Positions 351-64,000 of a DNA stretch of 64,000 nt are shown piece after piece. The notes beneath the pieces are model-generated. The model ran no database searches. It was not told the origin of the DNA and was given only the letters and a program-made list of their open reading frames with translations. The DNA lies in contig MCFE01000018.1 in NCBI GenBank assembly GCA_002104905.1, positions 182,066-246,065 on the forward strand. The letters are read 5' to 3'. This DNA is from Basidiobolus meristosporus CBS 931.73 (taxonomy: Eukaryota; Fungi; Basidiobolomycota). Each line of letters opens with the position of its first letter. The first letter of the stretch is position 1. Position numbers and translations under genes: made by a program.

Positions 351-3300
351 CTTGTGGTTCACTGCCTGTTAGTTTGTTTTTAATAACTGTAGTCCACCTT
401 TTTACTCCAAGCTTTCATATCCGCTCCCATATTCACATGGTTGACCCATAATACCATCTGTTTGCTTTGTAGAACCAAATGTGAACTGATACCAATTAGG
501 TGTACTGTCAATCTAGATCTACCGATTAGCTAGTTAAATGTGTCAGTCGATCCACCTAATTCCGGTATTGTTCATTGTCAATTTCTAACCAAATGCAGTT
601 TACACCAATAAAACCTCATTTATTAACACTCTCCACCCATGTGTGAGGAAAATACCATTAATCGGTAAGCGCTCTAAATAATGTGACTAATTGATTGTCA
701 AGATGAGGGTAAATTATTTTTGCATCGTGTTTCCTATGTGACCTATAAAACGATTCGTAGCCATATAGTAGCTGATTTGTTAATCGACAGGTTTCGACGC
801 TAGTATCTTAATAAAGTTACGCTTTATGATAATGACCACAAGTAAGGGTAGCATAATTGGGATAGTGTTAATGCTTCAACTATTAACAACTATGTAACAT
901 TGTCCGGTTCCTACTCAGCATGCGTGTAGACTCTCTTATCATCAATTGCTATTTGGGGATGAAGTATAAATTTAAATACATCTAACTCCGGTATTTCTCA
1001 GTCAAGAGCATCTACGAATTGTCAAGTAATCAAAAACCTGTGGATGGGGATGAAACCATTGCCATCTAATTTAATAACTACCCCTACTCAGGGTGGAGTT
1101 TTATCTCCTTTCGGCAAGTGGCGCACATATCATACCAATTTTGTCAGTAACATGAACTATATAATTCCGAGATCTTTTATATTATGCATTATTATTCTAA
1201 ACAGAAATGTGATCTGATAAAACTGCCTTTTTCAGTGAGCAGTACATTGATTGGCACTACCTTGCTATGGGTATGAAATATTAAACAAATAATATGGATT
1301 GAATCAACTAGCGGAATTAATATACCAATCCAAATATTCTACAATATTGACAAGGTACCGCTTACAATTCTTCATGCCATCATCTGTTGACATATGATCA
1401 TAGTATTAAGTTAGATACAAGGGTGCGTACTTGATCGCGTTTTAGCGGACTAGCCAGTTAATAGGCAAAGTCAAGACAGCCAGGACCCACTTATCGTGAT
1501 GCGATATGTAATATCATCAACAGTTATGCATTTTGCTTTCAAGTATAACGTAGTGCATAATTAATCGATTTTTTATTTTACATTTCTGTGGCCATTTGCG
1601 AAATGGCTTTCCATCTATGCTACTGACCGGAGCATCGGCACTTTCACAATCACACTACCACCGGCAGTGATCATGTGCATTGAAAGACATAAGCAACTCA
1701 AGATATTAGCGATGAGTTCTGCCAATCAACTAGTCAGACTGCTAGTATTGCATACCAAATTAAGGTGTTAGTATCTCAGATGGTTGGTGAGAGTTATTAA
1801 ACAGGCTCTACAAGGATCTATCGGTTGAATCAGTAATCAGATAGCAACTGACGATTTGTGGACATATGATCAGATATACTTGAATTGGGTGGATTCTCTC
1901 ATGTACATAACTGGCTTATTTCAGTGAAGTATCTACTCGGTGGCTCTAGACTGATGAAGCATTGGATTAGTGCTGTTCACATCGATATCTACGTAGGGAA
2001 CAAATGACATGTGAAGCCTAGCAATGTGAATATGGGAATTGGTAAAGAGGCCTGGAAGAAAGTGGCTGACTCTGTATTACTACCAATGACTTTCGATCAT
2101 GACCCTGTGAAAAAAATGCCATACAGAAGGAGTGGATAAATCATTACCAAAGATGCAGCATAAAAGGCTGACTAGGGCTTGACAAACATCAAGCCTAGTT
2201 TCACTCTACAAAAAGCCCGCTGTTAGACTGAATATTCCGTTTGCAGCGTCTCTGCTTGGCAGCCTTCCATCTGGAGGTCATTACGGTACCAGTACCGGAG
2301 AAGTTCGCATGAATTTTCAAGCGTGTCATGTTATATCCGAACCGCAGGTCGCACAAGACAAAGTTTATTTGTTGTCACGTCTAGAGTACTTGTAAAGAAT
2401 AAAACATCTATCGAGGGTAATTCTTAGTTGTATATATTGTATAGTTTAGGTTTGATATTTATGAATGGATACTATCTTCTATGGGGGAATAGGAAGTATT
2501 AGAGCTTGAAAGTTGGAGGTATAGTAGTTTTGCATGGATTTAACGTTGCGCTATATAATTCTGGATTCTAAAGATAAAAAATTAATTAAACCCTAACCCC
2601 GCTACCAAAGCTGGGCATGTTCGGTTCCGCACTTAATAGGTTTCTGAGAATATCGAAAAAATTATGGTATTTATTCGGCGTACAGGTGTCGTCAAATATC
2701 CCAGAGAGCCTTGCTTTTGACTAAATTCAACAATAATGTAGTGAAAGAGTCTACCGATGTCAGGAAACCTGTTGGGATCATATCTCCCAATGTTTCACCT
2801 ATCCAGTTTAAATGGTAGTGAAGAGCATTAGACTTTTGAACCTGTGCTTGGGCGTTCATGATTTGATCGGTCATGTATCGATGATCATCTTTTAAATGCA
2901 TAAATATGTTATTGTAAACCAATATACTGAAGAGCAATGCAATTATGAGTCGATTTAGAGAAGCTTACAGAAATTCGGCAGTTCAGAGGGCCTCCGAGTC
3001 GACGCGTTCAGAACTGAGTATTCATTGGCTTTGGCATAATTGAATACGTCTTCCGCCCATCCCAACGTCAGATACGGCAATCAGAACGCCCTTATGTCCA
3101 CCAAAGCAGCACTGAAATACACCGAGTATAATCAGTCCTATGGCTTTTATTAGAGATTCCTGCAGCGAATACCATAGCAATTTGACTGATCCCATTTGCA
3201 TTTAATTTACCACTGTACATGGTATTCATGATTCCCTTCACTACATTGTTGCTCAGGGTTTTACCTGCTCATTTACTGGAAAGACAGAGGTCAATACTTG

Positions 3301-4793
3301 TGGTACGATGGGTAACGCAGCAGGAATTACTTCAATGACTCATCCACTTGCATATAAAATCTACATATTTCACTAGCCTTAAATATATAACCCTTCTACG
3401 GTGGAGAATCATTCATGCTAGGCTTCTGCTGTTTGAAATACATAATTTCAGCGGAGGCAGAGCTTTTGGATACTAGTGAACATTATGTTTCAAGGTTGCT
3501 GGTTGAAATAACCCGCTGCGCATTGTTGATTGGCACTACGAAATATTATACAACCGTATGTGTATGTGGCTTGTATCAAATCACTGTAATGTGGATCTGT
3601 TTCCAAATTCGTAGTTCAGTGCTATGAAGAAATACATGAAATCTAGATCTTTTATTTTTTACACTATTGTTCCAAAATGCAATGTGATCTGAGACTCTTG
3701 CTGTTTTCAGTAAGCGGTACAATGATTAGCAGCACCATGCCGTAGATATGAGATATGTATCACATGTTGAATGGTTGGAATCAACTAATGGATTTGATAA
3801 ATCATTCCAAATATTCTACACTGTATTCATGGTGCCGCTCACGACTCTTCGTGCCGTCAGGTGTTGACACTTAGCCATACTACCAAGTAGATATTGTTGT
3901 TCAGACTTCACCACGTTTTAGCGGACTACCCAATTTGTAGATGTAACCATGAGGGCCAGGAATATACATGTCGAGATGCGCTATATAATGTTATCAACAT
4001 TAATGTAGTGGACATTCAGGTATGATGTAAAGCATTATTAATCTGCGATTTAGGAAACGTTTCTGTGGCTGGTTGGGATAATACTAGGTATAATACTATT
4101 CATCAGGTCCATTATTGCAATATTACATCAACGCTACCGCCGTGGAATCAGCATTATCCCAATCACGTTGCCATCAGCGATATGCATAAGCATATTGGCA
4201 CACATGTAAACCTATCACATTGTTAACTTTGCGACTTGCCAATCAGCCGGTCACATTGTTGGCATAGCGTGCCGATTCAAGGCATTACCTTTTCGAGATG
4301 TGTGGTGAAAGTTATTAAATGGATCTGTACGTTTCTATCGGCACAAACAGTATTCAGATAGAAATTGACGATACGAAATTGAATAAATGCTCAGATATAC
4401 CTGAATAAGGTGGATTTCCTCATGTTCATAGCTGGCTTATCTCAGTGAATCGGCCACTTGGTAGATCGAGATTGCTGAAGGTTCCGATTAGTGCTGATTC
4501 GCGTTGACCTCTACATTGGGAACGTATAACATGTGAAGCCCAGTGATGTGAATATGGAAATGGATGTTGAGGCCTGGAGCAAAGTGGCTGACTTTGCATT
4601 ATTACCAATAACTTTCGATCATGACCCCGGAAGAATGTACCATACGCAAGGAGTGGATAAATCATTACCAAAGATGCAGCATAAAAGGCAGGCTATGAGA
4701 AGTCAAACAGCAAGCCTAGTTTCACTCTACAAAAAGCCCTCCGTTTGACTGAATATTCCGTTTGCAGCATCTCTGCTTGGCACTCTTCCATTT

Positions 4794-5842
4794 GGAGGTC
4801 ATTACTGTACCAGTACCGGTGTTATTCACATGAACTTCCAAGCGTGTCATGTTGAATCCGAGCCGCAGGTTACCAGCGTGAAGTCAATGTATATTTGTTG
4901 TCACGTTTAGAGTACTTGTAAAGAATAAAACGTCTATCGAGGGTGAATCTTAGTTGCTTGTATGATATGGTTTAGGTTCAGTAGTTATGAATGGGCACTA
5001 TCTTTCCTGTAGGTGAGTAGGAAATGTTAGCGTTTGTATGTTGCAAGTTTAGTAGTTTAACATGGAATCAATGTTCCGCTATATATATAATGGGATTGGA
5101 GTGATTAAAAGCAAGCAAATATATGGAGGTGAAGAAGTGCTTTGAACAGGCAGCGCTTGCCGATTATAGAAGGTCGTTTGAAGATATGAAAGGGGAACAT
5201 AGATTTGGATTTAGTTCGGTGCATTTGCATCTTCAAATACCCCGGAGAATCTTGCTTCCGACTGAATCCAGCAGTAAATTGATTAATGAATCTATTGAGT
5301 TTAAGAAACAAGCTGTGACCATGATTGTTTACTACATTACAAGGAAGTTAGAGTCCCATACTTGGGGTATGGTGGGCTATGAAGCAAATATTACTAAAAT
5401 GACTTAACACTTGCGAATTAAATCGACACACGTAACTCGCCTTAAAGTTGAATCCGTCCAAGGTTTCATATTGTTTATGCCGGACCATTGCTGATTTAGA
5501 GTACGCATCCACCATATTTGCTTGCTTTTAATCACTCCAATCCCATTATATATATAGCGGAACATTGATTCCATGTTAAACTACTAAACTTGCAACATAC
5601 AAACGCTAACATTTCCTACTCACCTACAGGAAAGATAGTGCCCATTCATAACTACTGAACCTAAACCATATCATACAAGCAACTAAGATTCACCCTCGAT
5701 AGACGTTTTATTCTTTACAAGTACTCTAAACGTGACAACAAATATACATTGACTTCACGCTGGTAACCTGCGGCTCGGCTTCAACATGACACGCTTGGAA
5801 GTTCATGTGAATTACACCGGTACTGGTCCAGTATTGACCTCC
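4794..5842. repeat. Inverted repeat, arms ~4794-5123 and ~5513-5842, loop ~390 bp
   Basis: Arms are near-perfect reverse complements. Confidence 0.93.
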
Positions 5843-11800: not shown

Positions 11801-14800
11801 TAATGTACTAGTGCCGGTGTAGTTGACATGAACTTCCCAGCGTGTCATGTTTTATCCGAATCTTAGGTCACCAGCGTCAAGTCAAAGAATGTTTGGTGTA
11901 ACGACTTGAGTACTTGTAAAGAATAAAACGTCGATCGAGGGTTAATCTTAGTTGAATGTATGATATTGGTTGTGTTGAATAGTAATGAATTGACACTTAC
12001 TCCTATGAAGAGTAGGAAACGTTTTGATCGGATAAGTTAAGTTTGGTATCTTAGCATGAGTTTGACCTTGCGCTCTATATATAATTGAATCTCATTGATA
12101 GAAACGAAGTAAATGCAATATTACCTCCGTACTTCTGACAGGGCAATTGGCACTCTCCCAATCACCCCACCATCAGCAGTATACACCAGCATGTGGTGAC
12201 ATAAACAATCATTTCAAAATGTTAACTCTGTGACCTGCCAACCAGTAAGTGGTATTGTTGGCAATGCATCAAGATTAAAGGCATTACCTTTCGCAGATGT
12301 GTAGTCAAGAGTTATTAAAGAGATCTGTACGTTTCTATTGGTACAAGCATTATTCATATAGAAATTGACGATATGCGGATGGAATAAATGCTCAGATATA
12401 CCTAAATTGGGTGGATACTACCATGTTCATAACTTGCTTACCCTAATGTATCGGCCACTCGGTGGATCGAGATTGCTGAAGGAACCGATTAGTTCTGATT
12501 CCAGTTGGACTCTACATTAGGAACATAGGACATGTGAAGCCCAGCGATGTAAATGTGGAAATGGGAATAGAGGCCTGGTGCAAAGTGGCTGACTGCATTA
12601 CTACCAATAGCTGTCGATCATAACCCCGGAACAATAATGTCAGACGCAAGGAGTGGACAAATCATTCCTCAAGATGCAGCATAAAATCCTGACTAGGGTA
12701 CGGCAAACAGCAAGCCTAGTTTCACTCTACAGAAAGCCCGGCGTTCGACCGAACATTCCATTTGCAGCGTCTCTGCTTGGCTGCCTTCCATCCGAGGGTT
12801 ACTACTGTACAAGTACCGGTGTAGTTCGCATGATTTTCCAAGCATATCGTGTTATATCAGGAACGCAGGTCAAAAGCGTCAATTCGAAATTTATTTGTTG
12901 TTCTGATTAGAGTGCTTGTAAGGAATGAAACGACTATTGTGGGTGAATGTATGATATGGTGTAGGTTTCGTAGTTACGAATGAAAATTATTTCTCCTGTC
13001 AGGGAGTATGAAATATTCTGCTCGTATAATGCAAGTTTATTAGTTTAAATTTGAATCAACGTGGTGCAGTGTATATAATTTCATTGTAATCATAGGACTC
13101 GAGTCAATTTCTGGCCCTGAATACGAATCTCAAACGGGCAGAACGCGGTCTACATAATTCTGAACTATGAAAGGGTAGTGTTTTTAGGCCAGTAACATGG
13201 GTGGATTTCATTTCCACATTGATGAGTTATTTTAGCAAAATGACAACGTCGCCCATCATACCAGGAGTATTGGTCTCTGGATATCCAATCAACGAATAGC
13301 TTAAATTACCATGGCTTTAGCTACAGAAATCACTAGTAAGCGCCATAGAAAGGTCATATGCGGTACGTTTCAGTTCAGCTTTGTTACACACAAGAGTATT
13401 CATGAGGTCGTACCTGACGGTTGGGTCGCCGGAAGACTTGTTCATTTACGCCAAAGCCAGAGAAGTTCAGTTCAGAAAGTTCCGACTTGTAGATCGTGCG
13501 AACCGCCGTGTTATTGCAAACCAATCTGAATTGAAAAATCATCTTGAGCTGTCCATAATGTAGGTTACCGATAATGCTTGATTCATTTGCAAGATGATCA
13601 CCTATACACAACGGATTAAATCTTGAACGACCAATCTCTGGCTTGAAAGTAACAGGCCCTTTACTACCACTGAAGCTGGGTAGGCGACACATTGGGAAAT
13701 ATGGTAAGAGTATATTCCCAAATGTCCGCAGATTATTTCAACAAATTACCGCTGGATTGAGTCGGAAGCCATGCTATCTGAGATATTTGACGATACAAGT
13801 ACGCTGAACGAAAACCATATAAACATTTAACTAAGATTCACCATCAATAGACGTTTTATTCCTTACAACTACTCTGGTCATCATAACAAATAATTTTGAT
13901 TTGACTTTTGACCGGCGTTTCTGATATAACATGACCTGCTTAGAATTTCATGTGAACTACACCGGTACTTGTACAGTAGTAACCTCCGGATGGAAGGCAG
14001 CCAAGTAGAGACGCTGCAAACGGAATATTCGGTCGAACGGCGGGCTTTCTGTAGAGTGAAACTAGGCTTGCTGTTTGTCAAACCCTAGTCAGCCTTTTAT
14101 GCTGCATCTTTGGTAATGTTTTATTCCCTCATTGCGTATGGCATTATTGTTCCGGGGTGATGATCGACAGTTATTGGTTGATATACAGAATCAGCCACTT
14201 TGCTTCAAGCCTCTATATTCATTCCCACATTCACATTGCTGGGCTACACATGTCATTTTTTCCCTGCGTAGAGGTCAATGCGAATCTGTACTAATCGGAT
14301 CCTTCAGCTACCAAGATCCACGGAGTTGTTAATTCATGGAGATAAGCCATAGGTATGATGTACTAGTTCATGCTTATCTGAATGTAAATTCACCTGCACA
14401 TCATATATTGGTAGCTGATTACTGATAGTACTGATAGACCCGTATAGAACCCTTTAATAACTCTGACCACCAATCTGCGAAAGATCATGCCTTAAATCAA
14501 TATGCAATACAAACACTACAACTTTGATTGATAGGTCTTAAAGATGACATCTTGACTGGGTATCCTGTGTCAACATAATCCAACATTTATGGCTAATTCC
14601 CCGATCAGTAGTATGGGTGTAACATTGCAATGATGGCATTGGAGATCATTTTCTCAACCTGCCACGAAAATATATTTTCAATCAGCCGATTTATTATTCA
14701 TTACACTGTGCATCAAGATGGATGTATTCCTAGACGGCTTCGTCATAAATATAAACTGTTAGTCCGCTTAATCGTAGTGTAGTCTGAACAATAAGATCTA

Positions 14801-15602: not shown

Positions 15603-15619
15603 AACTAAATGCTCATACT

Positions 15620-15952
15620 TGTTGTAAAAATTTGTAATTTCCACCTAAATATTCACCTAACTTAGTCACTTAGATCATTACCTTCAAATCCTAGAGAATA
15701 CTGACCAAATTCCTTGTTGGGATTTACTTGGAATATTTACCCAGAACCTGAAAATTAGATAAGTTGTCCAAACAGCCCCAAACTTTGCACACATGCTCTT
15801 GGGACCTTCCTTAACCTATTCTACATGTTTCTTATGCCAAGACCATGTAAAAGTATAAATACTACTTTTACATTCAATAAATCATCAGCTGAAAACCACA
15901 TAATCTACCTGTTCTCCCAATCACTTCCAATATCTCCAAGACTCTTACAACA
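15620..15952 (+). repeat. 5' LTR of copia A
   Basis: Begins TGTTGTAAAA, ends TTACAACA, followed by PBS. Confidence 0.95.
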
Positions 15953-19396: not shown

Positions 19397-19413
19397 TATT
19401 GGAGCTTCTGAAC

Positions 19414-26914: not shown

Positions 26915-29900
26915 AATGGATTTGATAAATCATTCCAAATATTCTACACTCTGGTCATAGTGACGCTCACGACCCATCATGCCGTCATCTGTTGACACGT
27001 AGCCATACTACCAAGTAGATATTGTTGTTCAGACTTCACGTTTTAGCGGACTACCCAATTTGTAGATATAACCAAGAGGGCCAGGAATATACATGTCGAG
27101 ATGCGTGATATAATGTCACCAACAGTAATGTAATTGGCATTCAGATATGGTGTAAAGCATAATTAATCAGCGATTTAGGGTACGTTTCTGTGGCTAGTTG
27201 AAAAAATACTCTTGATCAGTTCCATTATTGCAATATTACATCTATGCTACTGCCGTGGAATTAGCACTATCCTAATCACGTTGCCATCAGCGATATGCAT
27301 AAGTATATTGGCACTCACGAAAACCTAGCAATATGTCAAGTGTGCACCCTTCCAACCATTCCTTCGCATTGTTAGGACTGCATGCCGATTCAAGTCGTTA
27401 CCTTTCTCAGATGTGTGATGAGAGTTATTAGAGGGATCTGTACGGTTCTATCAGTGCTATCAATAATCAGATAGGAATTGACGATATGCAGATGGAATAT
27501 ATGCTCGGATGTACCTGAATTGGGTGGATTCTCTCATGTTCATAACTGGCTTATCGCAGTAAATCGGCCACTCAGTGGATCGAGATTGATGAAGCATCCG
27601 ATTAGTGATGATTCGCGTTGACCTCTACATTGGGAACAAATGACATGTGATGCTCAGTGATGTGAATGCGGGAATGGGCATAGAGGCTTGGAGCAAAGTG
27701 GCTAACTCTGGACTATTACCAATAACTGTCGATTATGACCCTGGAACAATAATGCTATACGCAAGGAGGGGATAAATCATTACCGAAGATGCAGCATAAA
27801 AGGCAGACTATGGTATGACAAACCGCACGCCTAGTTTCACTCTACAAAAAGCCCGCCGTTAGACTGAATATTCCGTGTGCAGCTATTCTGCTTGGCAAAC
27901 CTCCATCCGGAGGTAACTCCTGTACAAGTGCCGGTGTTGTTCACATGAAATCCCAAGCGTGTCATGTTGAATTCGAACCTGAGGTCACCTGCGTCAAGGC
28001 GAAGTATATTTCTTGTCACGTTTAGAGTACATGTAAAGAATAAAACGTTTATCGAGGGTGAATATTATTTGATTGTATGATTTGTTTTTAGTTTAATAGT
28101 TATGAATGGGCACTATCTCTCCAGGAAGGCAGACGGAAATGTTAGCGTAATTATGTTGCTAGTATAGTAGCTTAACATGGATTTGATGTTGCACTATATA
28201 TAATTGAATAGCATTGAAAAATGAAGTAAATATTACTAAAATGAGTTATCAACTTGCGAATAAAATCTACACATGTCACTCACCTTAAAATTGAAGCCGC
28301 CCATGGTTTGGCATTATGTATGCCAGACTTTTGCTGATTTAAGTACATATCAGGTCCAAGTAGTTGTGACAAATCACCCCAGATGTCAAGTACTTCATAT
28401 CCACAGCAAGGTAGTGCGAATTATTGTATTTGGAGTATCACAACAAATTTATCCCGAGAACAATGCAAAAATAAAAGTTCCAGGTATCACACAATTCATG
28501 TACTTGTCTAACTACTGTATGTGTGCTACTTATGAAGAGAGGTTCATCACACTCAAATTTGGCCTAACTGGATACATAATCAACTCCGATCTCGGTAACC
28601 ACTAAAATATCTGATTGGTTGGGAATGACAATTCTGGATTTCTGTTCAAAACTGCTAACCACGACCCAGAACCATAATATCACAGCGCATGATCCAAAAG
28701 ACGACAAATGAAAATTCGATACCGAACTTGCTAGCCCCTGAGTAAAGATTCTAGTCAGCGACAACCCTGAAATAATAGGTCTGCGCTACATAAATCTATT
28801 GCCAGGAGGGGATAAATCATTACCAAAGATGCAGTATAAAAGGCAGGCTATTGCATGACAAACATCAAGCCTAGTTTCACTCTACAAAAAGCCCGCCGTT
28901 AGACTGAATATTCCGTTTGCAGCTATTCTGCTTGGTAGCCTTCCATCCGTAGTTCATTACTGAACCAGTGCCGGTGTAGCTCGCATGAACTTCCAAGCGT
29001 GTCATGTTGAGTCCGAACCTCAGGTTTCCAGCATCAAGAGGAAGTATGTTTGGTGTAACGACTAGAGTACCTGTAAAGAATAAAACGTTTTTCGAGGGTG
29101 AATCTTATTTGGATGAATGATATGGGTTGGGTTGAATAGTAACGAATTGACACTTACTCCTATAGAGAGTAGGAATCATTTTTATCGGTTAAGTCTAGTT
29201 TGTTATCTTGTTATGAGTTTTACCTTGGGCTATATATATAATGGATCCTATTGATAGAAATGAAGTGAATTTTGGATCTTTATACGTATTTTTAAGCTAC
29301 TAAATCCACAAATCTTTAGTCTGTCCAGCAGACCTGATAGCAGTTGGGCAGTTCGGACCTCCTCCAAGTCAATGCGTGCTGAACTGAGACCTCTTTGGCC
29401 TTTGGCGTCAGCGAAAAAGTGACGCTCTTGTATCCACCAAAGCACAACTGAAATGCACCGGGTACAATCAATGCTATTACATTTAATGGTGATTTCTGTA
29501 GGGAACGCCATCACAATCTGACTGGCTCCAGTTCCAATCCCATTGCGACTATATGAAATGTCCATGAGATCTTCCACTTCAACGTTGTGCAGTATTTTAA
29601 ATATTCGTTGGCTGGATATACAAAGGCCCATATTTATGGTATAATAGATGCCGTAGTCGATATTGCTAAAATCACTCATTAATGCAGGAATGAAAAATAC
29701 ATTGGTCATCTCCTACAATAAAACCTCTCCGGAATTCAGAATTACGAATGACTTGTCCCGACCATTAGAAATTCGTATCTACATCCTGCAACTGACTAAG
29801 TTTCATTATATCAACCAAATTATACTTACTGCGTAACGTCAAACCAATGCAATAAACATATGCTATGCTACTATACTTGAGTTGTCTGAGCTAAACGTTT

Positions 29901-37005: not shown

Positions 37006-37018
37006 GTATATTAACAGA

Positions 37019-37497
37019 ACTGAAGTCTTTGGCTTGGGCGTAGGTGAACAAGGCTTCCGCCCATCCTATCATCAGGTACGACCGCAAGAACGCCCTTGTA
37101 TCCGCCAAAGCGAATCTGAAATGCACCAGGTGTCAGCTTCTGGTTGGAGATTTCCGCAGCTAATGACAATGCGATTTGCCCGACTCCATTAGAATATGAA
37201 TGGCCGTTGCGCATGATATGGCAAAGAACCAACAGCTATGCTCCCGAAGCTGGGTGGATGAAAAAGCCAGGAAGCGATAATGTCGCTTGCCAATATGAAA
37301 TCCTTCAGTCAATGTTTCCTCAAAACTGTCGAAAACGGCTTGATTCAGCTGGCTGTTCGGGCCTATCTTCTCAAATCGCTCTTCTGAGAAGGTGACCTGG
37401 ATGAAGTACTCTCGGTATTGATGAAAGTGCCTCAACACTCGGTTTGAGGGCTCCAAAGATGGTGGTAAGAGGTGGATCTTGCTGGGAGTAACGAATG
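37019..37497 (-). pseudogene. Recent near-identical fragment of the intact RdRP with an internal ~160-bp deletion
   Basis: 37221-37497 is the reverse complement of 55534-55810 and 37019-37219 of ~55972-56175; only a few substitutions seen. Confidence 0.97.
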
Positions 37498-40400
37498 TCT
37501 AGACTTCAATTCCCGGATAGTCTCCAAACACTCAAAAATTCGTAGTTGTCGACAAATACTCATGTTACTTCTGATTGGAAAAATACTTTGGCGTATTCTT
37601 CTGTTTCTTGATTTTGAGGGCGCCTTTTTACTCCAAGCTTTCATATCCGCTCCCATATTCACATGGTTGGACCACACATACCATCTGTTTGCTTTGTAGA
37701 ACCAAATGTGAACTGATACCAATTAGGTGTACTGTCAATCTAGATCTACCGATTAGCTAATCCATTGCGATTAGCTAGTTAAATGCGTCAGTCGATCCAC
37801 CTAATTCCGGTATTGTACATTGTCAATTTCTAACCAAATGCAATTTGCACCAATGAAAACCTCATTTATTAACACTCTCCACCCATGTGAGAGGAAAATA
37901 CCTTAATTCGGTAAGCGCTCCAAATAATGCGACTAATGGATTGTCAAGACGAGTATCGCGATCTTATAATTTTTGCATCGTGTTTTCGATGTGAACTATA
38001 AAACGATTCATTGCCATATAGTAGCCGATTTGTTAATTGGCAGGTTTCAAAGCTAGTATCTTGATAAAGTTGCGCTTTACGATAATGACCACAACTGAGG
38101 GTAGCATAATTGGGATATTGTCAATGCTTCAACCATTAACACCTATGTAATATTGTCCAGCTCCTATTCAGCATGCATGCGGACTCTCTTATCATCAATT
38201 GCTTTTTGGGGATGAAGTATAAATTTAAACCCAACTCTGGTATTTCTCAGTCAACAGCATCTACAAGTCGTCAAGTAATCAAAAACCTGGGGATGGGGAT
38301 GAAACCATTGCCATCGAATTTAATAACTACCCCTACTCAGGGTGGAGTTTTATCTCCTTTCGGCAAGTGGCGCACATATCATACCAATTTTGTCAGTAAC
38401 ATGAACTATATAATTCCGAGATCTTTTATATTATGCATTGTTATTCTAAAGAGAAATGTGATCTGATAAAATTGCCTTTTTCAGTGAGCAGTACATTGAT
38501 TGGCACTACCTTGCTATGGGTATGGAATATTAAACAAATAATATGGATTGAATCAACTAGCGGAATTAATATACCAATCCAAATATTCTACAATATTGAC
38601 AAGGTACCGCTTACAATTCTTCATGCCATCATCTGTTGACATATGATCATAGTATTAAGTTAGATACAAGGGTGCGTACTTGATCGCGTTTGAGCGGACT
38701 AGCCAGTTAATAGGCAAAGTCAAGACAGCCAGGACACACTTATCGTGATGCGCTATGTAATATCATCAACAGCTATGCATTTGGCTTTCAAGTATAACGT
38801 AGTGCATAATTAATCGACTACTTGTTTTACATTTCCGTGGCCATTTGCGAAATGGCTTTCCATCAATGCTATGATTGCAATGTTCCATCTATGCTACTGA
38901 CCGGAGCATCGGCACTATCACAATCACACTACCATCGGCAGTGATCATGTGCATTGAAAGACATAAGTAACTCACGATATTAGCGATGAGTTCTGCCAAT
39001 CAACTAGTCAGACTGCTAGTATTGCATACCAGATTAAGGTGTTAGTATCTCAGATGGTTGGTGAGGGTTATTAAACAGGCTCTTTAAGGATCTATCGGTT
39101 GAATCAGTAATCAGATAGCAACCGACGATTTGTAGGAGGAATATATGATCAGATATACTTGAATTGGGTGGATTCTCTCATGTTCATAACTGGCTTATTT
39201 CAGTGAAATATCTACTCGGTGGATCTAGACTGATGAAGCATTTGATTAGTGCTGTTCACATCGATATCTACGTAGGGAACAAATGACATGTGAAGCCCAG
39301 CAATGTGAATATGGGAATGGGTAAAGAGGCCTGGAAGAAAGTGGCTGACTCTGTATTACTACCAATGACTTTCGATCATGACCCTGTGAAAAAAATGCCA
39401 TACAGAAGGAGTGGATAAATCATTACCAAAGATGCAGCATAAAAGGCTGACTAGGGCTTGACAAACATCAAGCCTAGTTTCACTCTACAAAAAGCCCGCC
39501 GTTAGACTGAATATTCCGTTTGCAGCGTCTCTGCTTGGCAGTCTTCCATCTGGAGGTCATTACTGTACCAGTACCGGAGAAGTTCGCATGAATTTTCAAG
39601 CGTGTCATGTTATATCCGAACCGCAGGTCACACAAGACAAAGTTTCTTTGTTGTCACGTCTAGAGTACTTGTAAAGAATAAAACATCTATCGAGGGTAAT
39701 TCTTAGTTGAATATATGGTATAGTTTAGGTTTGATATTTAAGAATGGATACTATCTTCTATGGGGGAATAGAAAGTATTAGAGCTTGAAAGTTGGAGGTA
39801 TAGTAGTTTTGCATGGATTTAACGTTGCGCTATATAATTCTGGATTCTAAAGATAAAAAATTAATTAAACCCTAACCGCGATACCAAAGCTGGGCACGTT
39901 CGGTTCCGAACTTAATAGGTTTCTGAGAATATCGAAAAAATTATGGTATTTATTCGGCGTACAGGTGTCGTCAAATATCCCAGAGCCTTGCTTTTGACTA
40001 AATCCAACAATAATGTAGTGAAAGAGTCTACCGATTTCAGGAAACCTGTTGGGATCATATTTCCCAATGTTTCATCTATCCAGTTTGAATGGTAGTGAAG
40101 AACATTAGACTTTTGAACCTGTGCTTGGGCGTTCATGATTTGATCGGTCATACATCGGTGATCATCTTTTAAATGCATAAATATGCTATTGTAAACCAAT
40201 ATACTGAACAGCAGTACAATTATGAGTCGATTCAGAGAAGCTTACAGAAATTCGGCAGTTCAGAGGGCCTCCGAGTCGATGCGTTCAGAACTGAGTATTC
40301 ATTGACTTTGGCATAATTGAATGCGTCTTCCGTCCATGCCAACGTCAGATACGGCAACCAGAACGCTCTTGAGTCCACCAAAGCAGCACTGAAATACACC

Positions 40401-41459
40401 GAGTATAATCAGTCCTATGGCTTTTACTAGAGATTCCTGCAGCGAATACCATAGCAATTTGACTGATCCCATTTGCATTTAATTTACCACTGTACATGGT
40501 ATTCATGATTCCTTTCACTACATTGTTGCTCAGGGTTTTACCTGCTCATTTACAGGAAAGACAAAGGTCAATACTTGTGGTATGATGGGTAACGCAGCAG
40601 AAATTACTTAAATGACTCATCCACTTGCAAATGAAATCTACATATTTCACTAGCCTTAAAATATAACCCTTCTACGGCTGAGAATTATGCATGCTAGGCT
40701 TCTGCTGTTTAAAATACATAATTTCAGCGGAGGTAGAACTTTTGGATACTAGTGAACATTATGTTTTAAGGTTGCTGATTGAAATAACCCGCTGCGCATT
40801 GTTGATTGGCACTACAAAATATTATACAACCGTATGTGGCTTGTATCTAATCACTGTAATGTGGATCTGTTTCCAAATTCGTAGTTCAGTGCTATGAAGA
40901 ACTACATGATATCTAGATCTTTTATTTTTTACACTATTGTTCCAAAATGCAATGTGATCTGAGACTCCTGCTGTTTTCAGTAAGCGGTACAATGATTAGC
41001 AGCACCATGCCGTAGATATGAGATATGTATCACATGTTGTATGGTTGGAATCAACCGATGGATTTGATAAATCATTCCAAATATTCTACACTGTGGTCAT
41101 GGTGCCGCTCACGACTCTTCGTGCCGTCAGGTGTTGATACATAGCCATACTACCAAGTAGATATTGTTGTTCAGACTTCACCACGTTTTAGCGGACTACC
41201 CAATTTGTAGATGTAACCAAGAGGGCCAGGAATATACATGTCGAGATGCGTTATATAATGTCATCAACAGTAATGTACTGGGCATTCAGATATGATGTAA
41301 AGCATTATTAATCTGCGATTTAGGAAACGTTTCTTTGGCTGGTTGGGATAATACTCTTCATCAGGTCCATTATTGCAATATTACATCAACACTACCGCCG
41401 TGGAATCAGCACTATCCTAATCACGTTGCCATCAGCGATATGCATAAGCATATTGGCAC

Positions 41460-43745
41460 ACATGTAAACCTATCACATTGTTAACTTTGCGACTTGCCAA
41501 TCAGCCGGTCGCATTGTTGGCATAGCGTGCCGATTCAAGGCATTACCTTTCTGAGATGTATGGTGAAAGTTATTAAAGGGATCTGTACGTTTCTATCGGT
41601 ACAAGCAGTATTCAGATAGAAATTGACGATACGAAATTGAATAAATGCTCAGATATACCTGAATAGGGTGGATTTCCACATGTTCATAACTGGCTTATCT
41701 CAGTGAATCAGCCACTCGGTAGATCGAGATTGCTGAAGGTTCCGATTAGTGCTGATTCGCGTTGACCTCTACATTGGGAACGAATAACATCTGAAGCCCA
41801 GCAATGCGAATATGGAAATGGATGTTGAGGCCTGGAGCAAAGTGACTGACTTTGCATTATTGCCAATAACTTTCGATCATGACCCCGGAAGTATGTACCA
41901 TACGCAAGGAGTGGATAAATCATTACCAAAGATGCAGTATAAAAGGCAAGCTGTGAGATGACGAACAGCAAGCATAGTTTCACTCTACAAAAAGCCCGCC
42001 GTTAGACTGAATATTCCGTTTGCAGCTATTCTGCTTGGTAGCCTTCCATCCGTAGTTCATTTACTGAACCAGTGCCGGTGTAACTCACATGAACTTCCAT
42101 CAATGACATGTTGAATCCGAACCTCAGGTTTCCAGCGTCTAGTTGAAGTATGTTTGGTGTAACGACTAGAGTACCTGTAAAGAATAAAACGTTTTTCGAG
42201 GGTGAATCTTATTTGGATGAATGATATGGGTTGGGTTGAATAGTAACGAATTGACACTTACTCCTATAGAGAGTAGCAATCATTTTGACCGGGTAAGTCT
42301 ACTTTGTTATCTTGGCATGAGTTTGACCTTGCGCTATGTCAGAAATTGGGCAGTTCGGACGTTCTCCAGGTCAATGCTTGCTGAACTGGGACTTCTTTGG
42401 CCTTTGGCGTCAGTGAATAAGTCTACCGCCCATTCTAACGTCAGATACGACCGAGAGAACGCTCTTGTGCAACTGAAATGCACCGGGTACAATCAATGCT
42501 ATTACATTTAATGGTGATTTCTTTAGGGAACGCCATCGCAATCTGACAGACTCCGGTTCCAATCCAATGGCGACTATATGAAATGTCCATGAGATCTTCC
42601 AATTCAACGTTGCGCAGTATTTTAAATATTCGTTGGCTGGATATACAAAGGCCCATACTCAAGGTATGATAGGCGCCGTAGTCGACATTCCTAAAATCAA
42701 TCATTAATGCGAGAATGAAAAATACGTGTGTCAACCGTCTTAAAATAAAACCTCTTCGGAATTGAGAATACGAATGACGTGTCCCGGCCGTTAGTAATTC
42801 ATATCTACATCCGACAACTAACCAAGTTTCATCATATCAACCGAATTATAAATATTACGTAATGTCAAAACAAAACAATAAACATATGCTACGCTACTAT
42901 ACTTGAATTGTCTGATCTAAACCATTCCTACTCTCTATATGAGAAAGTGTCAATTCGTTACTATTCAACCCAACCCATATCATTCATCCAAATAAGATTC
43001 ACCCTCGAAAAACGTTTTATTCTTTACAGGTACTCTAGTCGTTACACCAAACATACTTCAACTAGACGCTGGAAACCTGAGGTTCGGATTCAACATGTCA
43101 TTGATGGAAGTTCATGTGAGTTACACCGGCACTGGTTCAGTAAATGAACTACGGATGGAAGGCTACCAAGCAGAATAGCTGCAAACGGAATATTCAGTCT
43201 AACGGCGGGCTTTTTGTAGAGTGAAACTATGCTTGCTGTTCGTCATCTCACAGCTTGCCTTTTATACTGCATCTTTGGTAATGATTTATCCACTCCTTGC
43301 GTATGGTACATACTTCCGGGGTCATGATCGAAAGTTATTGGCAATAATGCAAAGTCAGTCACTTTGCTCCAGGCCTCAACATCCATTTCCATATTCGCAT
43401 TGCTGGGCTTCAGATGTTATTCGTTCCCAATGTAGAGGTCAACGCGAATCAGCACTAATCGGAACCTTCAGCAATCTCGATCTACCGAGTGGCTGATTCA
43501 CTGAGATAAGCCAGTTATGAACATGTGGAAATCCACCCTATTCAGGTATATCTGAGCATTTATTCAATTTCGTATCGTCAATTTCTATCTGAATACTGCT
43601 TGTACCGATAGAAACGTACAGATCCCTTTAATAACTTTCACCATACATCTCAGAAAGGTAATGCCTTGAATCGGCACGCTATGCCAACAATGCGACCGGC
43701 TGATTGGCAAGTCGCAAATTTAACAATGTGATAGGTTTACATGTG
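41460..43745. repeat. Inverted repeat, arms ~41460-42280 and ~42925-43745
   Basis: ORFs 41708-41983(-) and 43221-43496(+) give identical 91-aa translations. Confidence 0.96.
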
Positions 43746-45944
43746 CCACATTATGCTGGTGCTTACTGCGGATGGTCACGTAATTGGGATAGTACTAATA
43801 CCCTGGCCTGTGGCATTGAAATATTTGCGTTTGAATAATGCAAGTTTACTACAATAAAAATGAAGTAAATTACTGGACGTAGATACCTATTTCAAACAGC
43901 CTGAACCCGGCATACATAATTATGAACTGTAATAGGGTTATATTTTAAGGCGAGTGATATACTTCGATTTCGTTGGCAAGTTGATAAGACATTTTAGTAA
44001 TATCTATTACGTTGCCCACACTACCCCAAGTATGGCCTCAGTCTTTCCGGAACACGAGTATTCAATACCCTGATCAGCGTTGTAGTGAGAGAAATTATAG
44101 ATGCCATATAGTGGCAATTTGTATGCAAATGAAGTCAGCTATGTTGCCACGGTATTCGCTGCGGGAATCTTTAGTATATGACATAGGATTTCTAATACCG
44201 GATGCAGTCAAGTTCTGCTTTGGTGGAGACAACAGCGTACTTACGGTCCTGTCTAATATTACCAATGCCGGAAATCTGGTTTACTCACACCAATGCCTAA
44301 GTAATCTCCGCTCGGAACGTATCAACTTAAAGTACGTTCGATATATCATTCAATCTGTCATAGTAATTCAATTATATACATATCTAAACGTTACACCCAT
44401 GCCAATCTACTATTCATGCTAGGTTCAAAAACAAATTTTCCATGCTTTCTACAGGCGAGATACGGGTATATACACAAATATCAAACTTAAACCATAAAAT
44501 ACTTCCACCTTCGATAGACTTTTTATTCCTAACAAGTACTCTAGTGGCTACAACATATATACTCTGACTTGATGCTCGTGACTTGCGTTACGGATATAAC
44601 ACGACACGCTTGGAAATAGACGTGAGCACCCGTACTGGTACAGGAGTGACCTTCAGATCAAAGGCTGCCAAGCGGAGAAGCTGCAAACGGAATATTCAGT
44701 CAAACGGCGGACTTTTTGTAGAGTGAAACTAGGCTTGCTGTTTGATACACCGTAGCCAGCTTTTTATGCTGCATCCTTGGTAATAATTTATCCCCACATT
44801 TCGTATGAGATTATTATTCCAGGGTCATGATAGCATGTTATTGGTAGTAGAACAGAGTCAGCCACTTTGCTCCAGGCCTCTATTCACATTTCCACATTTA
44901 CACCGTTGGGCTGCACATGTCATTTGTTCCCAGTGTCGATGCTGATACGAATCGTTACTAATCGGCTCCTTTAGGAATCTCGATCCTCCGAGTGTCCGAT
45001 TCACTGAGATAGAAAAGCGATGAGCATAAGTGAATCCACGCAATTTAGGTAAATCCAGCCATATATTACCTGCACCTCATCGATATCTCCATGATTGCTG
45101 CTTTTATCAATCAAACCGTACTGTTTTCATTTAATAACTTTCACCATCTATTCGTAAGGATAAGACCTCATTTCGTTATGCAATGCAAACGAGCTACTGA
45201 TTGATCGCCGATTCGTTAAGCCAATACCTCGACAGTGATGCTACAAATTTAGTATATATAATCATTTTATTGAATTGGATCAAGGTGAAGCTATTTATAA
45301 TAGGTATATAGCGTCAAATTTATAGAGTGCAATTCAAAAATACTTCTGGGCTAGTGATTATTTTCAATTAGCATGAATAAAGGATGCGCAATGAATTAAT
45401 TCAACATATTTCGATTTCACTTTAGCTCAGTCGACAGTATTCTGTGTGGATACAAGATTTCAGGTAACAGTATAAAGCATTAGTTAAGTTTTGTTTGCGA
45501 TATGCTTGTGCGTGGTATACTAATCAATCACCGCAATAACCTTATACTCAAATTTATCCCTTAACATTCTCTGGTACGGCATGAAATGAGGTAATTACTG
45601 AAAGCATGATTGGGACCAGTAGTGTGTTACCTAAGTACCGAGGTGGAAATCGACTTGGAGATCAAAATCCACCCATTACTTGATTATTTACCGTACCAAT
45701 ATCCATGGATTACTGGGTTTGAAGCCTGGAACCTATGTGCCGACCAGATTAGAATACCCGGGGTGCTTTCTTCCAGCCACACTCAACATGTAGCTTATGT
45801 ACACCATATGATTTTGGTTCTGAGCTGCAGTGCCCGATAACACTACGGAACTGGCAGTTCAAAATAATGGTGAATCAACATTACCGCCGAGTAACGATAA
45901 CCCACAATATATATGCCACGTACTAACCGTATCTCCCCACCTAT

Positions 45945-47710: not shown

Positions 47711-50700
47711 GGGTCTGTACGGTTTAATGCACAAAAGCAGTCACATCATAGATCTGGATGTGATGCCAGTAGATATAGGACCATATCCGGTTCAATTGGG
47801 TGGATTTTCCTTTGCCTTTCTTTTTGCTTATCTCAGTAAATTGGCTTTTCAGTGGATCGAGATTGATTAGGTATTCGATTAGTAAAGATTTGTATTGGAA
47901 TCTACATTGGGAACCAATGACATGTGAAGCCCAACAATGTCAATATGGGAATGCGAATAGTGGCTTGGAGCACAGTGACTGTCGTTGCATTACTTACAAT
48001 CACCTTCGATCTTGACTCCGGACCAATGTACCATACGCAAGGAGTGGATAAATCCTTAGTACTTCCAAGCGTGTTTTGTTGAATTCGAACCTCAGGTCAA
48101 AAGCGTCAAGTTGCAGTTTGTTTGTTGTAACGACTAGAGTGCTTGTAAAGAATAAAACGTCTATCGAGGGTGAATCTTAGTTTCATGTATAATATGGTTT
48201 AGGTTTAATATATATGAATGGGCCCTATTTCTCCTGTAAGGGAGTAGACAATGTTCTCATATGAATGATGCAAGTTTGGTAGCTTAGCCGGATTCAATGT
48301 TGCGCCATGTTTATATAATCGGATTGCAACCATAAAAACGAAGTAGATGTTGGATCTTCAAACGTATTTCAAACTAGTTAACCGGGCATACTTGATTTCG
48401 AACTGTCGAAGGTTTCTGAGCATATGTGTTTATCACAATGATCTGGTTTTCATTCAGCGCATTGGTGTCATGAAATATCCCTGGGAGCCTTACTTTCGAC
48501 TGAACCCAACAGTAAACCAGTATAGTAAACAGCAGTACGTTATTAATAGATTCAGAAGAGATAATGGAAATTCAGCAGTTCGGACGATCCTCGAGTTTGA
48601 TACGTTCTGAGCTGAGACTTCTTTGGCTTTAGTGTGAAATAAACCAGACTTCCGCCAATCCTAAGGTTAGATACGACCACAAGACCGCTCTAGTGTCCAC
48701 CAAATCTTTGGATTGAATGAATAAGTCTTCTGCCCATTCGAACGGCAGATACGACCATCAGAACGCTTTTGTCTTCACCAAAGCAGAACTGGACTGCACC
48801 GGGTATTACCAATCCTATAGCATTTACTAGGGACCTCCGCCTGGATTGCCACAGTAATGTGACCAACACCTTTTTCATAAAAATTGCCAGTGTATATGCT
48901 ATCCATGATTTCTTTCACTATATCGTTGCTCAGGGTTTTACCTGCTCGTATCCTGGAAAGACAAGCCAATACTTATGATATGATGGGTAACGTAGCAGAA
49001 ATTACTTGAATGGCTCATCCACTTGCAAATGAAATCTACATATTTCACTAGCCTTAAAATATAACCTTTTTACGGTTAAGAATCATGCATGCTAGGCTTT
49101 TGCTGTTTGAAATACATAATTTCAGCGGAGGTAGAACTTGTGGATACTAGTGAACATTATGTTTCAAGGTTGCTGATTGAAATAACCCGCTGCGCATTGT
49201 TGATTGGCACTACAAAATATTATACAACCGTATGTGGCTTGTATCTAATCACTGTAATGTGGATCTGTTTCCAAATTCGTAGTTCAGTGCTATGAAGAAC
49301 TACATGATATCTAGATCTTTTATTTTTTTCGCTATTGTTCCAAAATGCAATGTGATCTGAGACTCCTGCTGTTTTCAGTAAGCGGTACAATGATTAGCAG
49401 CACCATGCCGTAGATATGAGATATGTATCACATGTTGTATGGTTGGAATCAACCGATGGATTTGATAAATCATTCCAAATATTCTACACTGTGGTCATGG
49501 TGCCGCTCACGACTCTTCATGCCGTCATCTGTTGACACATAGCCATACTACCAAATAGATATTATAGCTCAGACTTCACTAAGTTTTAGTGGACTACCCA
49601 ATTTGTAGATGTAACCAAGAGGGCCAGGAATATACATGTCGAGATGTGTTATATAATGTCATCAACAGTAATGTAATTGGCATTCAGATATGGTGTAAAG
49701 CATAATCAATCAGCGATTTAGGGTACGTTTCTCTGGCTGGTTGGGATAATACTCTTCATCAGGTCCATTATTGCAATGTTACATCTATGTTACTGCCGTG
49801 GAATTAGCACTATTCTAATCACGTTGCCATCGGCGATATATATAAGCATATTGCCAATATGTCAAGTTTACACCCTTGCAACCATTCATTGTTAGGATTG
49901 CATGCCGATTCAAGGCATTACCTTTCTTCGATGTGTGATGAGAGTTATTAAAGGGATCTGTACGGTTCTATCGGTACAAATAGTATTCAGATAGAAATTA
50001 ACGATACGAAAGTGTATAAATACTCAGATATACCTGAATAGGGTGGATTTCCTCATGTTCATAACTGCCTTATCTCAGGGAATCGGCCACTCGGTGGATC
50101 GATATTGCTGCAGGTTCCGATAAGTGATGATTCGCGTTGACCTCTACATTGGGAACAAATGTCATGTAAGGCCCAGTGATTCCAATGTGGGAATGAACAT
50201 TGAGGCTTGGAGCAAAGTGGCTGACTCTGCATTATTACCAATAACTGTCGATCATGACCCCGGAACAATAATGCCATACGCAAGGAGGGGATAAATCATT
50301 ACCGAAGATGCAGCATAAAAGGCAGGCTATGGTACGACAAGCATCAAGCCTAGTTTCACTCTACAAAAAGCCCGCCGTTAGACTGAATATTCCGTTTGCA
50401 GCGTCTCCGCTTGGCTGCCTTCCATTCGGAGGTAACTCCTGTACCAGTGCCGGTGTAGTTGACATGAACTTCCAAGCGTGTCATGTTTAATCCGAATCTC
50501 AGGTCACCAGCGTCAAGTCAAAGAATGTTTGGTGTAATGACTAGAGTACTTGTAAGGAATAAAACGTCTATCGAGGGTTAATCTTAGTTGAATGTATGAT
50601 ATTGGTTGTGTTGAATAGTAATGAATTGACACTTACTCAGAGAGTCGGAAACGTTTTTATCGGATAAGTCAAGTTTGGTGTCTTGGCATGAGTTTGACCT

Positions 50701-53700
50701 TGTGCTATATATATAATTATATCTCATTGGTAGAAACGAAGTAAATGCAATATCACCTCCACACTTCTGACAGAGCAATCGTTTCAAAGTGTTAACTCTG
50801 TGACCTGCCAATCACTAAGTCGTATTGTTGGCATTGCATGAAGATTTAAGGCATTACATTTCGCAGATGTGTGGTTAAGAGTTATTCAAGGGATCTGTAC
50901 GTTTCTATCGGTACAAGCAGTATTCATGTAGAAATTGACGATATGCGGATGGAATAAATGCTCAGATATACCTAAATTGGGTGGATACTATCATGTTCAT
51001 AATTTGCTTACCCCAATGTATCGGCCACTCGGTGGATCGAGATTGCTGAAGGAACCGATTAGTTCTGATTCCCGTTGGACTCTACATTAGGAACATAGGG
51101 CATGTGAAGCTCAGCGATGTAAATGTGGAAATGGGAATAGAGGCCTGGTGCAAAGTGGCTGACTGCATTAGTACCAATAGCTGTCGATCATAACCCCGGA
51201 ACAATAATGTCAGACGCAAGGAGTGGACAAATCATTCCTAAAGATGTAGCATAAAATGCAGACTAGGTACGGCAAACAGCAAGCCTAGTTTCACTCTACA
51301 GAAAGCCTGCCGTTCGACTGCACATTTCATTTGCAGCGTCTCTGCTTGGCTGCCTTCCATCCGAGGGTTACTACTGTACAAGTACCGGTGTAGTTCGCAT
51401 GATTTTCCAAGCATATCGTGCTATATCAGGAACGCAGGTCAAAAGCGTCAATTCGAAATTTATTTGTTGTTCCGATTAGAGTGCTTGTAAGGAATAAAAC
51501 GACTATTATGGGTGAATGTATGATATGGTGTAGGTTTCGTAGTTACGAATGAAAATTATTTCTCCTGTCAGGGAGTATGAAATATTCTGCTCGTATAATG
51601 CAAGTTTATTAGTTTAAATTTGATTCAACGTGGTGCAGTATATATAATTTCATTGTAATCATAGGAATCGAGTCAATTTCTGGCCTTGAATACGAATCTC
51701 GAACGGGCAGAACGCGGTCCACATAATTCTGAACTATGAAAGGGTAGTGTTTTTAGGCCAGTGGCATGGGTGGATTTCATTTCCACATTGATGAGTTATT
51801 TTAGCAAAATGACAACGTCGCCCATCATACCAGCAGTATTGGTCTCTGGATATCCAATCAACGAATAGCTAAAATTACCATGGCTTTAGCTACAGAAATC
51901 ACTAGTAAACGCCATAGAAATGTCATATGCGGTACGTTTCAGTTCAGCTTTGTTGCGCACAAGAGTATTCATGAGGTCGTACCTGACGGTTGGGTCGCCG
52001 GAAGACTTGTTCATTTACGCCCAAGCCAGAGAAGTTCAGTTCAGAAAGTTCCGACTTGTAGATCGTGCGAACCGCCGTATTATTGCAAACCAATCTGAAT
52101 TGAAAAATCATCTTAAGCTGTCTGAAATGTAGGTTACCGATAATGCTTGATTCATTTGCGAGATGATCACCTATACATAACGGATTAAATCTTGAACGAC
52201 CAATCACTGGCTTGAAAGTCACTGGCCCTTTACTACCACTGAGGCTGGGTAGGCGACACATTGGCAAATATGGTAAGAGTATATTCCCAAATGTCCGCAG
52301 ATTATTTCAACAAATTACCGCTGGATTGAGTCGGAAGCCATGCTATCTAAGATATTTGACGATACAAGTACGCTGAACGAAAACCATATAAACATTTAAC
52401 TAAGATTCACCCTCAATAGACGTTTTATTCCTTACAACTACTCTGGTCATCATAACAAATAATTTTGATTTGACGTTTGACCGGCGTTTCTGATATAACA
52501 TGACCTGCTTAGAATTTCATGTGAACTACACCGGTACTTGTACAGTAGTAACCTCCGGATGGAAGGCAGCCAAGCAGAGACGCTGCAAACGGAATATTCA
52601 GTCAAACGGCGGGCTTTTTGTAGAGTGGAACTAGGCTTGATGTTTGTCTTCTCATAGCCCGCCTTTTATGCTGCATCTTTGGTAATGATTTATCCACTCC
52701 TTGCGTATGGTACATTCTTCCGGGGTCATGATCGAAAGTTATTGGTAATAATGCAAAGTCAGCCACTTTGCTCACCAGTTCATTGGCTACTCTTAATGCT
52801 GATGTTTTGATAGGGTTGCATATTCCACTTTATGCAAATGACCATTGCTGATGATAGCGTAATCGAGATGGTGATAATGCCTCAGTCAGAAATATAGATG
52901 CAATATTGCCATCATGGCCTTGATGGAAAGCCATTCCTAAACCGACCACAAACACGTATTGTTGATTGTCCATTTATTATGCATTGGCCTTATCTGAATG
53001 CAAAATACATCAATGTAGATGACATTACATAGTGCATCACGATAAGTATATTCCCGGTAGCGTTAGGTATACATATGAAATGGAGAGTTCACTATACCGC
53101 GGTGAAGTAGGATCCTAAGTATCACATTTATATCTATGATCAATGTCAACAGATAATGAAGATTTGAGAGTGGCACCTTGACCAGTGTAAAATATTCATC
53201 ATAATTTTTCATTTCTAATGCAGGAATATAAAATCTCATCTCACTTCAATTCCGAATTTCTGTTCAGAACTCCTTGTCATGACCCCAGAATCTAGATATA
53301 CGTGCACATGATGCAATTTACGACAAATGGATAAATCGTTACCGAAGTTGCCAGCCCCTGCATGATGTTTTTTGTCGGTCTTGTTGAAACATATTACGTA
53401 AACACATCCAGTACAAATTCCATAGGCAGTGCAATTAATGAATATGAATAGTCACTTGCGACCTGTGGTTCGGATATACCACGATATGCTTGGAAATTCA
53501 AGTGATCATCAAATGAACTGGTACAGAAGTGATCGCTAGATACAAGGCTGACAAGCAAAGAATGCTGAATACGGAATATTCGGTCTAACGGCGGTCTTCT
53601 GTAGAGTAAAACTAGGCTTGCTGTTTGTTATGCCATACACTGCCTTTTATGCTAAGCCTCTATATCCATTCCCGGTGGTTAATGCCTATCTGTACCAATC

Positions 53701-63805: not shown

Positions 63806-63846
<41 letters not shown>

Positions 63847-64000
63847 GGTTAGGGTTAGGGTTAGGGTTAGGGTTAGGGTTAGGGTTAGGGTTAGGGTTAG
63901 GGTTAGGGTTAGGGTTAGGGTTAGGGTTAGGGTTAGGGTTAGGGTTAGGGTTAGGGTTAGGGTTAGGGTTAGGGTTAGGGTTAGGGTTAGGGTTAGGGTT
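63804..64000 (+). repeat. Telomeric repeat tract (TTAGGG)n, chromosome end
   Basis: Uninterrupted GGTTAG/TTAGGG hexamer array to the window end; one TTTAGGG variant near 63824. Confidence 0.99.

Follow-up and report, generated by a model that had tools for sequence, protein, structure and literature searches.

How did fragments of an RNA-dependent RNA polymerase (RdRP) gene come to be repeated, mostly in antisense, ahead of the intact gene at one chromosome end of the fungus Basidiobolus meristosporus, and could they still act on that gene? The window (the whole 64-kb stretch of contig MCFE01000018.1 that we analysed) closes on a TTAGGG array and is therefore the terminal 64 kb of the chromosome; the intact RdRP is the final ordinary gene ahead of a telomeric retroelement stack, and proximal to it lies a repeat-rich block (1-53850) in which RdRP-derived fragments (R) recur beside a repeat (X). 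An earlier note had taken the recurring module for a whole RdRP whose core had been turned round, flanked by its N- and C-terminal parts in sense. We conclude that the module is probably a composite subtelomeric repeat, in which a captured gene fragment was amplified locally and then decayed, and not a rearranged polymerase gene.

Outside the intact gene there are 12 RdRP-derived pieces (Table 1), 11 old and one young (G), with nine of the 12 antisense to the gene (that is, on the minus strand) and three in sense. Ten of these places were found by tblastn with the intact protein, and a DNA profile (nhmmer) built from them recovered two further short remnants; the survey of copies covered the 64-kb window, and module copies are known from one array. 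The recurring module with a minus-strand RdRP core is real, as A, B, A' and B' show (tblastn E 1e-48 to 1e-10; nhmmer), but the four modules offered as examples reduce to two, A and B, each present twice through one segmental duplication. Similarly, both landmarks of the core that had been described as running from FLAFS to ENQI exist, but they were assembled from different copies: FLAFS is confined to the gene and G (37259-37273), and DDT/ENQI to the gene, B, B', C and C'. Homology of the R copies to the RdRP domain is supported by tblastn (E down to 1.8e-48) and by matches (E 5e-14) to a family profile made from 30 full-length RdRPs, which was searched against 2835 six-frame pieces of the window with every filter disabled; with Pfam alone the best R piece scores 13.4 bits, under the cut-off.

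All the old pieces derive from codons ~485-766 (profile positions 476-742 only, with G at 377-587), and none reaches the catalytic loop at codons 803-807. Outside the gene, the DNA matches extend no further than gene position 56637, the protein matches no further than codon ~764 and the profile matches no further than position 742, so that nothing past codon ~766 was found by any of them. The motif D.DGD occurs once in the six frames of the window, inside the intact gene at 56784-56798 (shuffled sequence gives 0.1), which bears out the claim that the catalytic segment is missing from every copy. Stops or frameshifts interrupt every copy but D, and the damage that followed the founding differs from copy to copy, with the deletion of gene 56272-56544 in B and truncations or internal deletions in C, E, F and H.

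The sequences on either side of R are of another kind. The supposed sense N-terminal part (1760-2598) is the 3' half of X1, and the supposed C-terminal part (3367-4230) is a 278-bp spacer followed by the 5' end of the next X, a ~1.5-kb non-coding repeat present in ~20 copies in both orientations, many of them without any R. With the intact protein, tblastn at E up to 50-100 detected nothing RdRP-like in the individual flanks or in a consensus drawn by majority from 18 X copies; the tblastn matches of seven Basidiobolus and Entomophthorales paralogues and orthologues with full N- and C-termini were confined to the core, with none in the flanks, where the family profile likewise found nothing. 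Pfam recognised no family in the stop-free X and spacer pieces (among the 10 + 92 array pieces scanned), and local alignments of flanks and leader with the remaining gene sequence stayed at the level of shuffles. The unit is thus not an RdRP with an inverted core: only codons ~485-766 were captured, and the flanks are unrelated repeat DNA.

Several identities were considered for these flanks and rejected. A coding gene in X was set aside as its open frames vary from copy to copy with no consistent frame; X has no similarity to the telomeric long interspersed nuclear element (LINE) stack, and it is not a tRNA-derived or known RNA element, the window having zero tRNA and zero Rfam families. The idea that the leader or spacer prolongs the gene in diverged form, for instance as an intron or exon since lost, failed on scores equal to those of shuffles. 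Most X copies carry a TATA-like motif, TATATATAA (at ~5085-5100 in X2, as GCGCTATATATATAAT), ~40 bp from the X 3' terminus, which is directed into the adjoining R fragment, and from both sides in palindromic units.

The breakpoints of the old pieces point to a single founder fragment. Gene homology starts at 55831 in A, A', B and B' and at 55836 in F (blastn), whilst D and E begin at the same position of the family profile as the 5' break of the other lineages, and upstream of this break an alignment shows a ~75-95 bp non-gene leader common to A, B, D, E and F. The 3' break falls in the HPGD codons (~56670) in B, B', D and a remnant beside X6, and the X 3' terminus follows directly in antisense. 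We also built a tree in which the copies were read on the codon grid of the gene (the letter X standing at stops and partial codons), with Basidiobolus and other fungal RdRPs as outgroups; a phylogeny of modules, which the earlier note had proposed as a check, is informative on a single origin only with paralogue outgroups, and protein paralogues were added. The old copies form a single clade with an ultrafast bootstrap (UFboot) of 100, sister to the gene plus G (94) and, within the Basidiobolus paralogues, next to P0002 and P0003, which places the origin of the founder in the lineage of this gene itself; the copies are also nearer to the window gene than to P0002 and P0003 by tblastn. The common junctions are stronger evidence for one founder than the tree. 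On this point the earlier proposal holds, as one pre-broken, catalytically dead template was amplified, with a common leader, a 3' junction common to several copies and one clade.

Two arrangements of the unit are found. In A and B it is tandem, X(+) R(-) spacer X(+), with X1 and X2 offset by 2475 bp, and in C, D/E, F and H it is palindromic, X(+) R X(-), with both X 3' termini toward R; the palindrome around E, for example, has arms at 41402-42288 and 42916-43802 which are 97.3% identical over 887 bp. A segmental duplication of ~14 kb pairs 397-14204 with 37623-52772 at 90-95% identity. Within the first block A and B are ~72% identical in R, yet 96-100% identical over 3380-3980, and the same holds in both duplicated blocks. 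The stretches concerned (3380-3980 vs 10410-11010 and 40660-41250 vs 49060-49650) comprise the spacer and the X 5' end, over which A and A', compared between the blocks, are 94-98% identical. A-B identity in each block (96-100%) set against A-A' identity (94-98%) means that conversion was independent in each block since the 14-kb duplication, and gene conversion between neighbouring units has therefore continued after that event. The array is telomere-proximal, built of kilobase repeat units and homogenised within itself, the features by which subtelomeric segmental duplications and macrosatellites are recognised.

The old copies fall into five lineages ({A,A'}, {B,B'}, {C,C'}, {D,E} and F), 58-77% identical to one another and 58-70% to the gene, with an unremarkable substitution spectrum (transition/transversion ratio ~1.2); repeat-induced point (RIP)-like mutation was rejected as the cause of divergence, there being no C-to-T excess. 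The longest exact matches of the old copies to the gene are 11-17 nt, with zero shared 21-mers, which leaves them short of the at least 21 nt of identity to a target that marks a small interfering RNA (siRNA) locus, and the inverted R partners E and F are only ~62% identical. The old copies would not now be able to guide sequence-specific silencing of the gene; with 58-70% identity, stops and zero exact 21-mers, an RNA-based effect of the old copies on the gene is unlikely. Differences between D and E fall 19/11/11 by codon position, which shows no codon-position bias, and the open frame in D was rejected as a functional mini-protein on this ground, together with the lack of a Pfam match and of short protein relatives (none were found in a search that says little, given its length and word limits).

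The data show that an internal piece of ~0.84 kb (codons ~485-766), ending 37 codons before DLDGD, was excised once from the neighbouring RdRP gene. A ~95-bp non-gene leader became attached to its 5' break and the X 3' terminus to its 3' break. The X-R unit so formed was amplified locally: tandem duplication (period ~2.47 kb) added copies, inversion gave X(+)-R-X(-) palindromes, and a single segmental duplication of ~14 kb added more, while gene conversion goes on evening out parts of neighbouring units. The copies would then have decayed neutrally to pseudogene fragments which presumably encode nothing now and seem too diverged to yield small RNAs matching the intact gene, and they probably arose through the break repair and ectopic recombination that chromosome ends commonly undergo rather than through selection for a product. 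This corrects the inverted-core picture: a single, catalytically empty captured fragment probably hitch-hiked in a subtelomeric repeat and decayed. Several points weigh against this account. A dispersed, mobile X-R element elsewhere in the genome is possible, as the copy search was of the window only; comparisons of repeat X with Pfam, Rfam, tRNAs and the LINE stack gave no match that would point to its origin; and long pseudogene branches could inflate monophyly (long-branch attraction). The earlier note had also held that differing breakpoints would speak against a single template, and whilst the 5' break is common to the lineages, the 3' junction of A and A' differs, ending at codon 757 with a telomere-like 13-mer.

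This 13-mer, GGGGTTAGGGTTT on the gene-sense strand, lies precisely where the 3' end of R_A or R_A' meets the X terminus (2587-2599 and 39867-39880) and is missing from the other lineages. Its 11-nt core, GGGTTAGGGTT, has a chance expectation of 0.01 per window. The 13-mer runs in the direction that would result if a broken gene facing the chromosome end had been healed.

The young fragment G is separate from the old R family. Its young part (37017-37497, minus strand) matches gene 55534-55810 at 99.6% and 55972-56176 at 97.6%, with clean deletions between, and adjoins an old N-terminal piece (37498-37626, codons ~103-148, 71% identical to the gene). G and the gene have 370 exact 21-mers in common. 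The sister block lacks G and has 60 bp at 337-397 where the G block has 820 bp. On the plus strand, G lies directly downstream of a same-sense copia long terminal repeat (LTR) at 36503-36803 and a copia internal piece (36803-37005), and this LTR, at 71% identity to the reference LTR, is old as well. G looks like a recent patchwork repair or conversion product, and it is the only RdRP piece that could, on its match length, act on the gene via RNA; a regulatory small-RNA role limited to G and the X palindromes is conceivable.

A whole-RdRP module of N(+), core(-) and C(+), from which read-through would yield a transcript carrying both sense and antisense RdRP, accounts for a core that is antisense to the gene in all four named modules and for a catalytic loop missing from every copy; we regard it as close to untenable, given flanks that lack N- or C-terminal RdRP similarity by every search, that match the remaining gene no better than shuffles do, and that consist of a repeat many copies of which occur without R. 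Some of the same architecture would suit a non-autonomous foldback or Pack-MULE-type DNA transposon, in which X forms long terminal inverted repeats with inward promoters, has captured the RdRP piece and is copied by transposition. In C, D/E, F and H the 3' termini of inverted X copies do face R, identity reaches 97% in one X pair, the TATA-like motif near the X inner end is a putative promoter, and there is precedent for the capture of a silencing-gene fragment in rice miR820/OsDRM2 (PMC3459959). However, the arms are cut at differing X positions (472, 475, 630 and 659), the units abut directly with no clean outer ends seen (target-site duplications were not searched for), the A and B units are tandem rather than inverted, all copies seen are in one array, and no transposase domain was found among the scanned array ORFs (open reading frames) and stop-free pieces, so that we consider a transposon unlikely.

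The near-perfect palindromes raise the further idea that the array is a working source of small RNAs, with X palindromes and antisense R, chiefly G, giving double-stranded RNA (dsRNA) that tunes or silences the adjacent RdRP gene. Long palindromes of this quality, R copies in both orientations, and an antisense G with long exact matches to the gene, placed downstream of a copia LTR in the same sense, are what such a source would offer; against it, the old R copies have no 21-mer in common with the gene, inverted R partners such as E and F reach only ~62% identity, and the LTR beside G is old, and the idea seems quite improbable. A bolder version, which we hold to be very improbable, would make the chromosome end an antisense trap for its own silencing polymerase: pieces would be copied backwards into the array repeatedly, the R family being a fossil round and G the current one, and transcripts from the copia LTR or X palindromes would give antisense RNA or dsRNA down-tuning the RdRP paralogue. 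If true, it would be a fungal counterpart of the transposon-borne miR820 acting on OsDRM2. The best-supported reading remains that this locus is largely ordinary subtelomere biology.

Table 1. Features of the window, with position, strand and supporting evidence or remarks.
Feature	Position	Strand	Evidence or remark
Repeat X copy X1, non-coding	1170..2598	+	72.7% identical to 3645-5085
R_A, codons ~485-757, stops and frameshifts	2610..3366	-	tblastn 56%/47% identity, E 1.8e-48; blastn 69.4% to 55831-56491; nhmmer
Non-gene leader/spacer, 278 bp, joined to R 5' break	3367..3644	-	92-97% identical in A, B, A', B'
Repeat X reference copy X2	3645..5122	+	~20 X copies in both orientations; no Pfam family
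R_H, internally deleted, between X2(+) and inverted X3(-)	5161..5428	-	nhmmer E 3e-21, 3.5e-12
R_B, internal deletion of gene 56272-56544, runs to HPGD codons	9727..10396	-	tblastn, nhmmer
R_C, sense, flanked by X6(+) and X7(-)	13201..13828	+	tblastn, nhmmer
49-bp remnant of R 5' end fused to X8 3' terminus	28223..28271	-	nhmmer E 4e-5; junction sequence
R_D, most diverged fragment, open 153-codon ORF	29251..29712	-	tblastn, family profile, nhmmer
G, young patchwork and old N-terminal piece	37017..37626	-	DNA and tblastn matches to gene
R_A', segmental-duplicate copy of R_A, 95.4%	39889..40643	-	nhmmer
R_E, centre of X palindrome	42338..42727	-	nhmmer
R_F, sense; preceded by X 3' terminus and common leader	43963..44342	+	leader alignment, nhmmer
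R_B', duplicate of R_B, 94.7%	48381..49041	-	nhmmer
R_C', duplicate of R_C, 96.6%	51770..52403	+	nhmmer
Intact cellular RdRP ORF, 1120 codons incl. stop	54378..57740	+	Pfam, PDB matches, catalytic motif
Telomere array TTAGGG	63806..64000	+	puts whole locus in subtelomere

The intact gene shows both marks of a cellular RdRP, a full-length domain match and the DbDGD loop. The RdRP domain spans aa 388-934 (PF05183, 572 bits vs a cut-off of 23.8, E 1.6e-171, profile positions 1-580 of 582), an RRM_1 domain lies at aa 21-66 (Pfam), solved RDR1/RDR2-type polymerases in the PDB match at E 1e-118, and the catalytic GGDLDGD is at aa 801-807 (56778-56798), DLDGD being codons 803-807. Its closest named relatives are paralogues in B. 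meristosporus CBS 931.73 (77% identity) and proteins of B. ranarum, and it is a plain member of the cellular RdRP family. The public protein model of this gene has 743 aa and begins at codon 378 of the ORF, which is open for a further 377 codons upstream (54378-55508) that encode the RRM. The first Met of the ORF falls within the RRM, so the public model looks truncated and an additional 5' exon is likely.

Nested copia-type LTR retrotransposons with gag, integrase and reverse transcriptase domains (Pfam) split the array at 15605-26905; the copia LTR is ~335 bp long, and solo LTRs of that family at 9-337, 36503-36803 and 58494-58825 flank the duplicated blocks. Interstitial TTAGGG remnants were also detected within the window. 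Two fold-back palindromes, at 7147-8870 and 45939-47714, have arms that are 97.9% and 98.5% identical, and their centres hold a piece of copia LTR and a TTAGGG dimer (8121-8132 on the minus strand and 46703-46714 on the plus strand), the central spacer being inverted between the two duplicates. Inside the repeat block is a unique island with a DnaJ gene (31.4-36.5 kb), which holds two intact ORFs on the minus strand (34120-35220 and 32452-33474): one encodes a DnaJ-domain protein, the other is 367 aa without a Pfam match.

Among known systems, a transposon-borne fragment of a host silencing gene is found in rice, where miR820 of CACTA elements targets OsDRM2 (PMC3459959). As in that case, part of a gene of the host silencing pathway sits here in a repeated element, some of it in antisense, but the old copies no longer match the gene, only G is similar enough, and X is a putative transposon or small-RNA source at most. 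A survey in rice has also described endogenous siRNA loci derived from pseudogenes in inverted or antisense duplicates, which depend on close identity with either the parent or the partner arm (PMC2708354). Our locus superficially resembles these in having antisense and inverted pseudogene fragments of the parent gene in cis, and differs in an identity of 58-70% to the parent and ~62% between inverted R partners. Set against the cellular RdRP family (PF05183; plant RDR1/RDR2, 7w82 and 7eu0; Neurospora QDE-1, 2j7n), the intact gene belongs in full and has the DbDGD loop, and the fragments derive from the middle of that domain, but they have neither loop nor ORF and singly fall under the Pfam threshold. 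If G is transcribed, it would represent retroelement-linked antisense RNA aimed at a host silencing gene, and G is the one testable lead of the locus.

Subtelomeric duplications and macrosatellites that carry gene fragments include the yeast Y' elements and human D4Z4/DUX4. The piece embedded here is a decayed internal fragment of a silencing polymerase and not an ORF as in those arrays, and the units are 58-85% identical and truly tandem only over short stretches. What is shared is the setting and the dynamics: an array less than ~60 kb from the telomere, kilobase units each with a gene piece, tandem and inverted copies, homogenisation by conversion within the array, and interstitial telomere repeats. 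The locus therewith offers a clear, datable record of fungal chromosome-end dynamics, in which fragment capture, tandem and palindromic copying, a 14-kb duplication and recent conversion can be read in one stretch of DNA.

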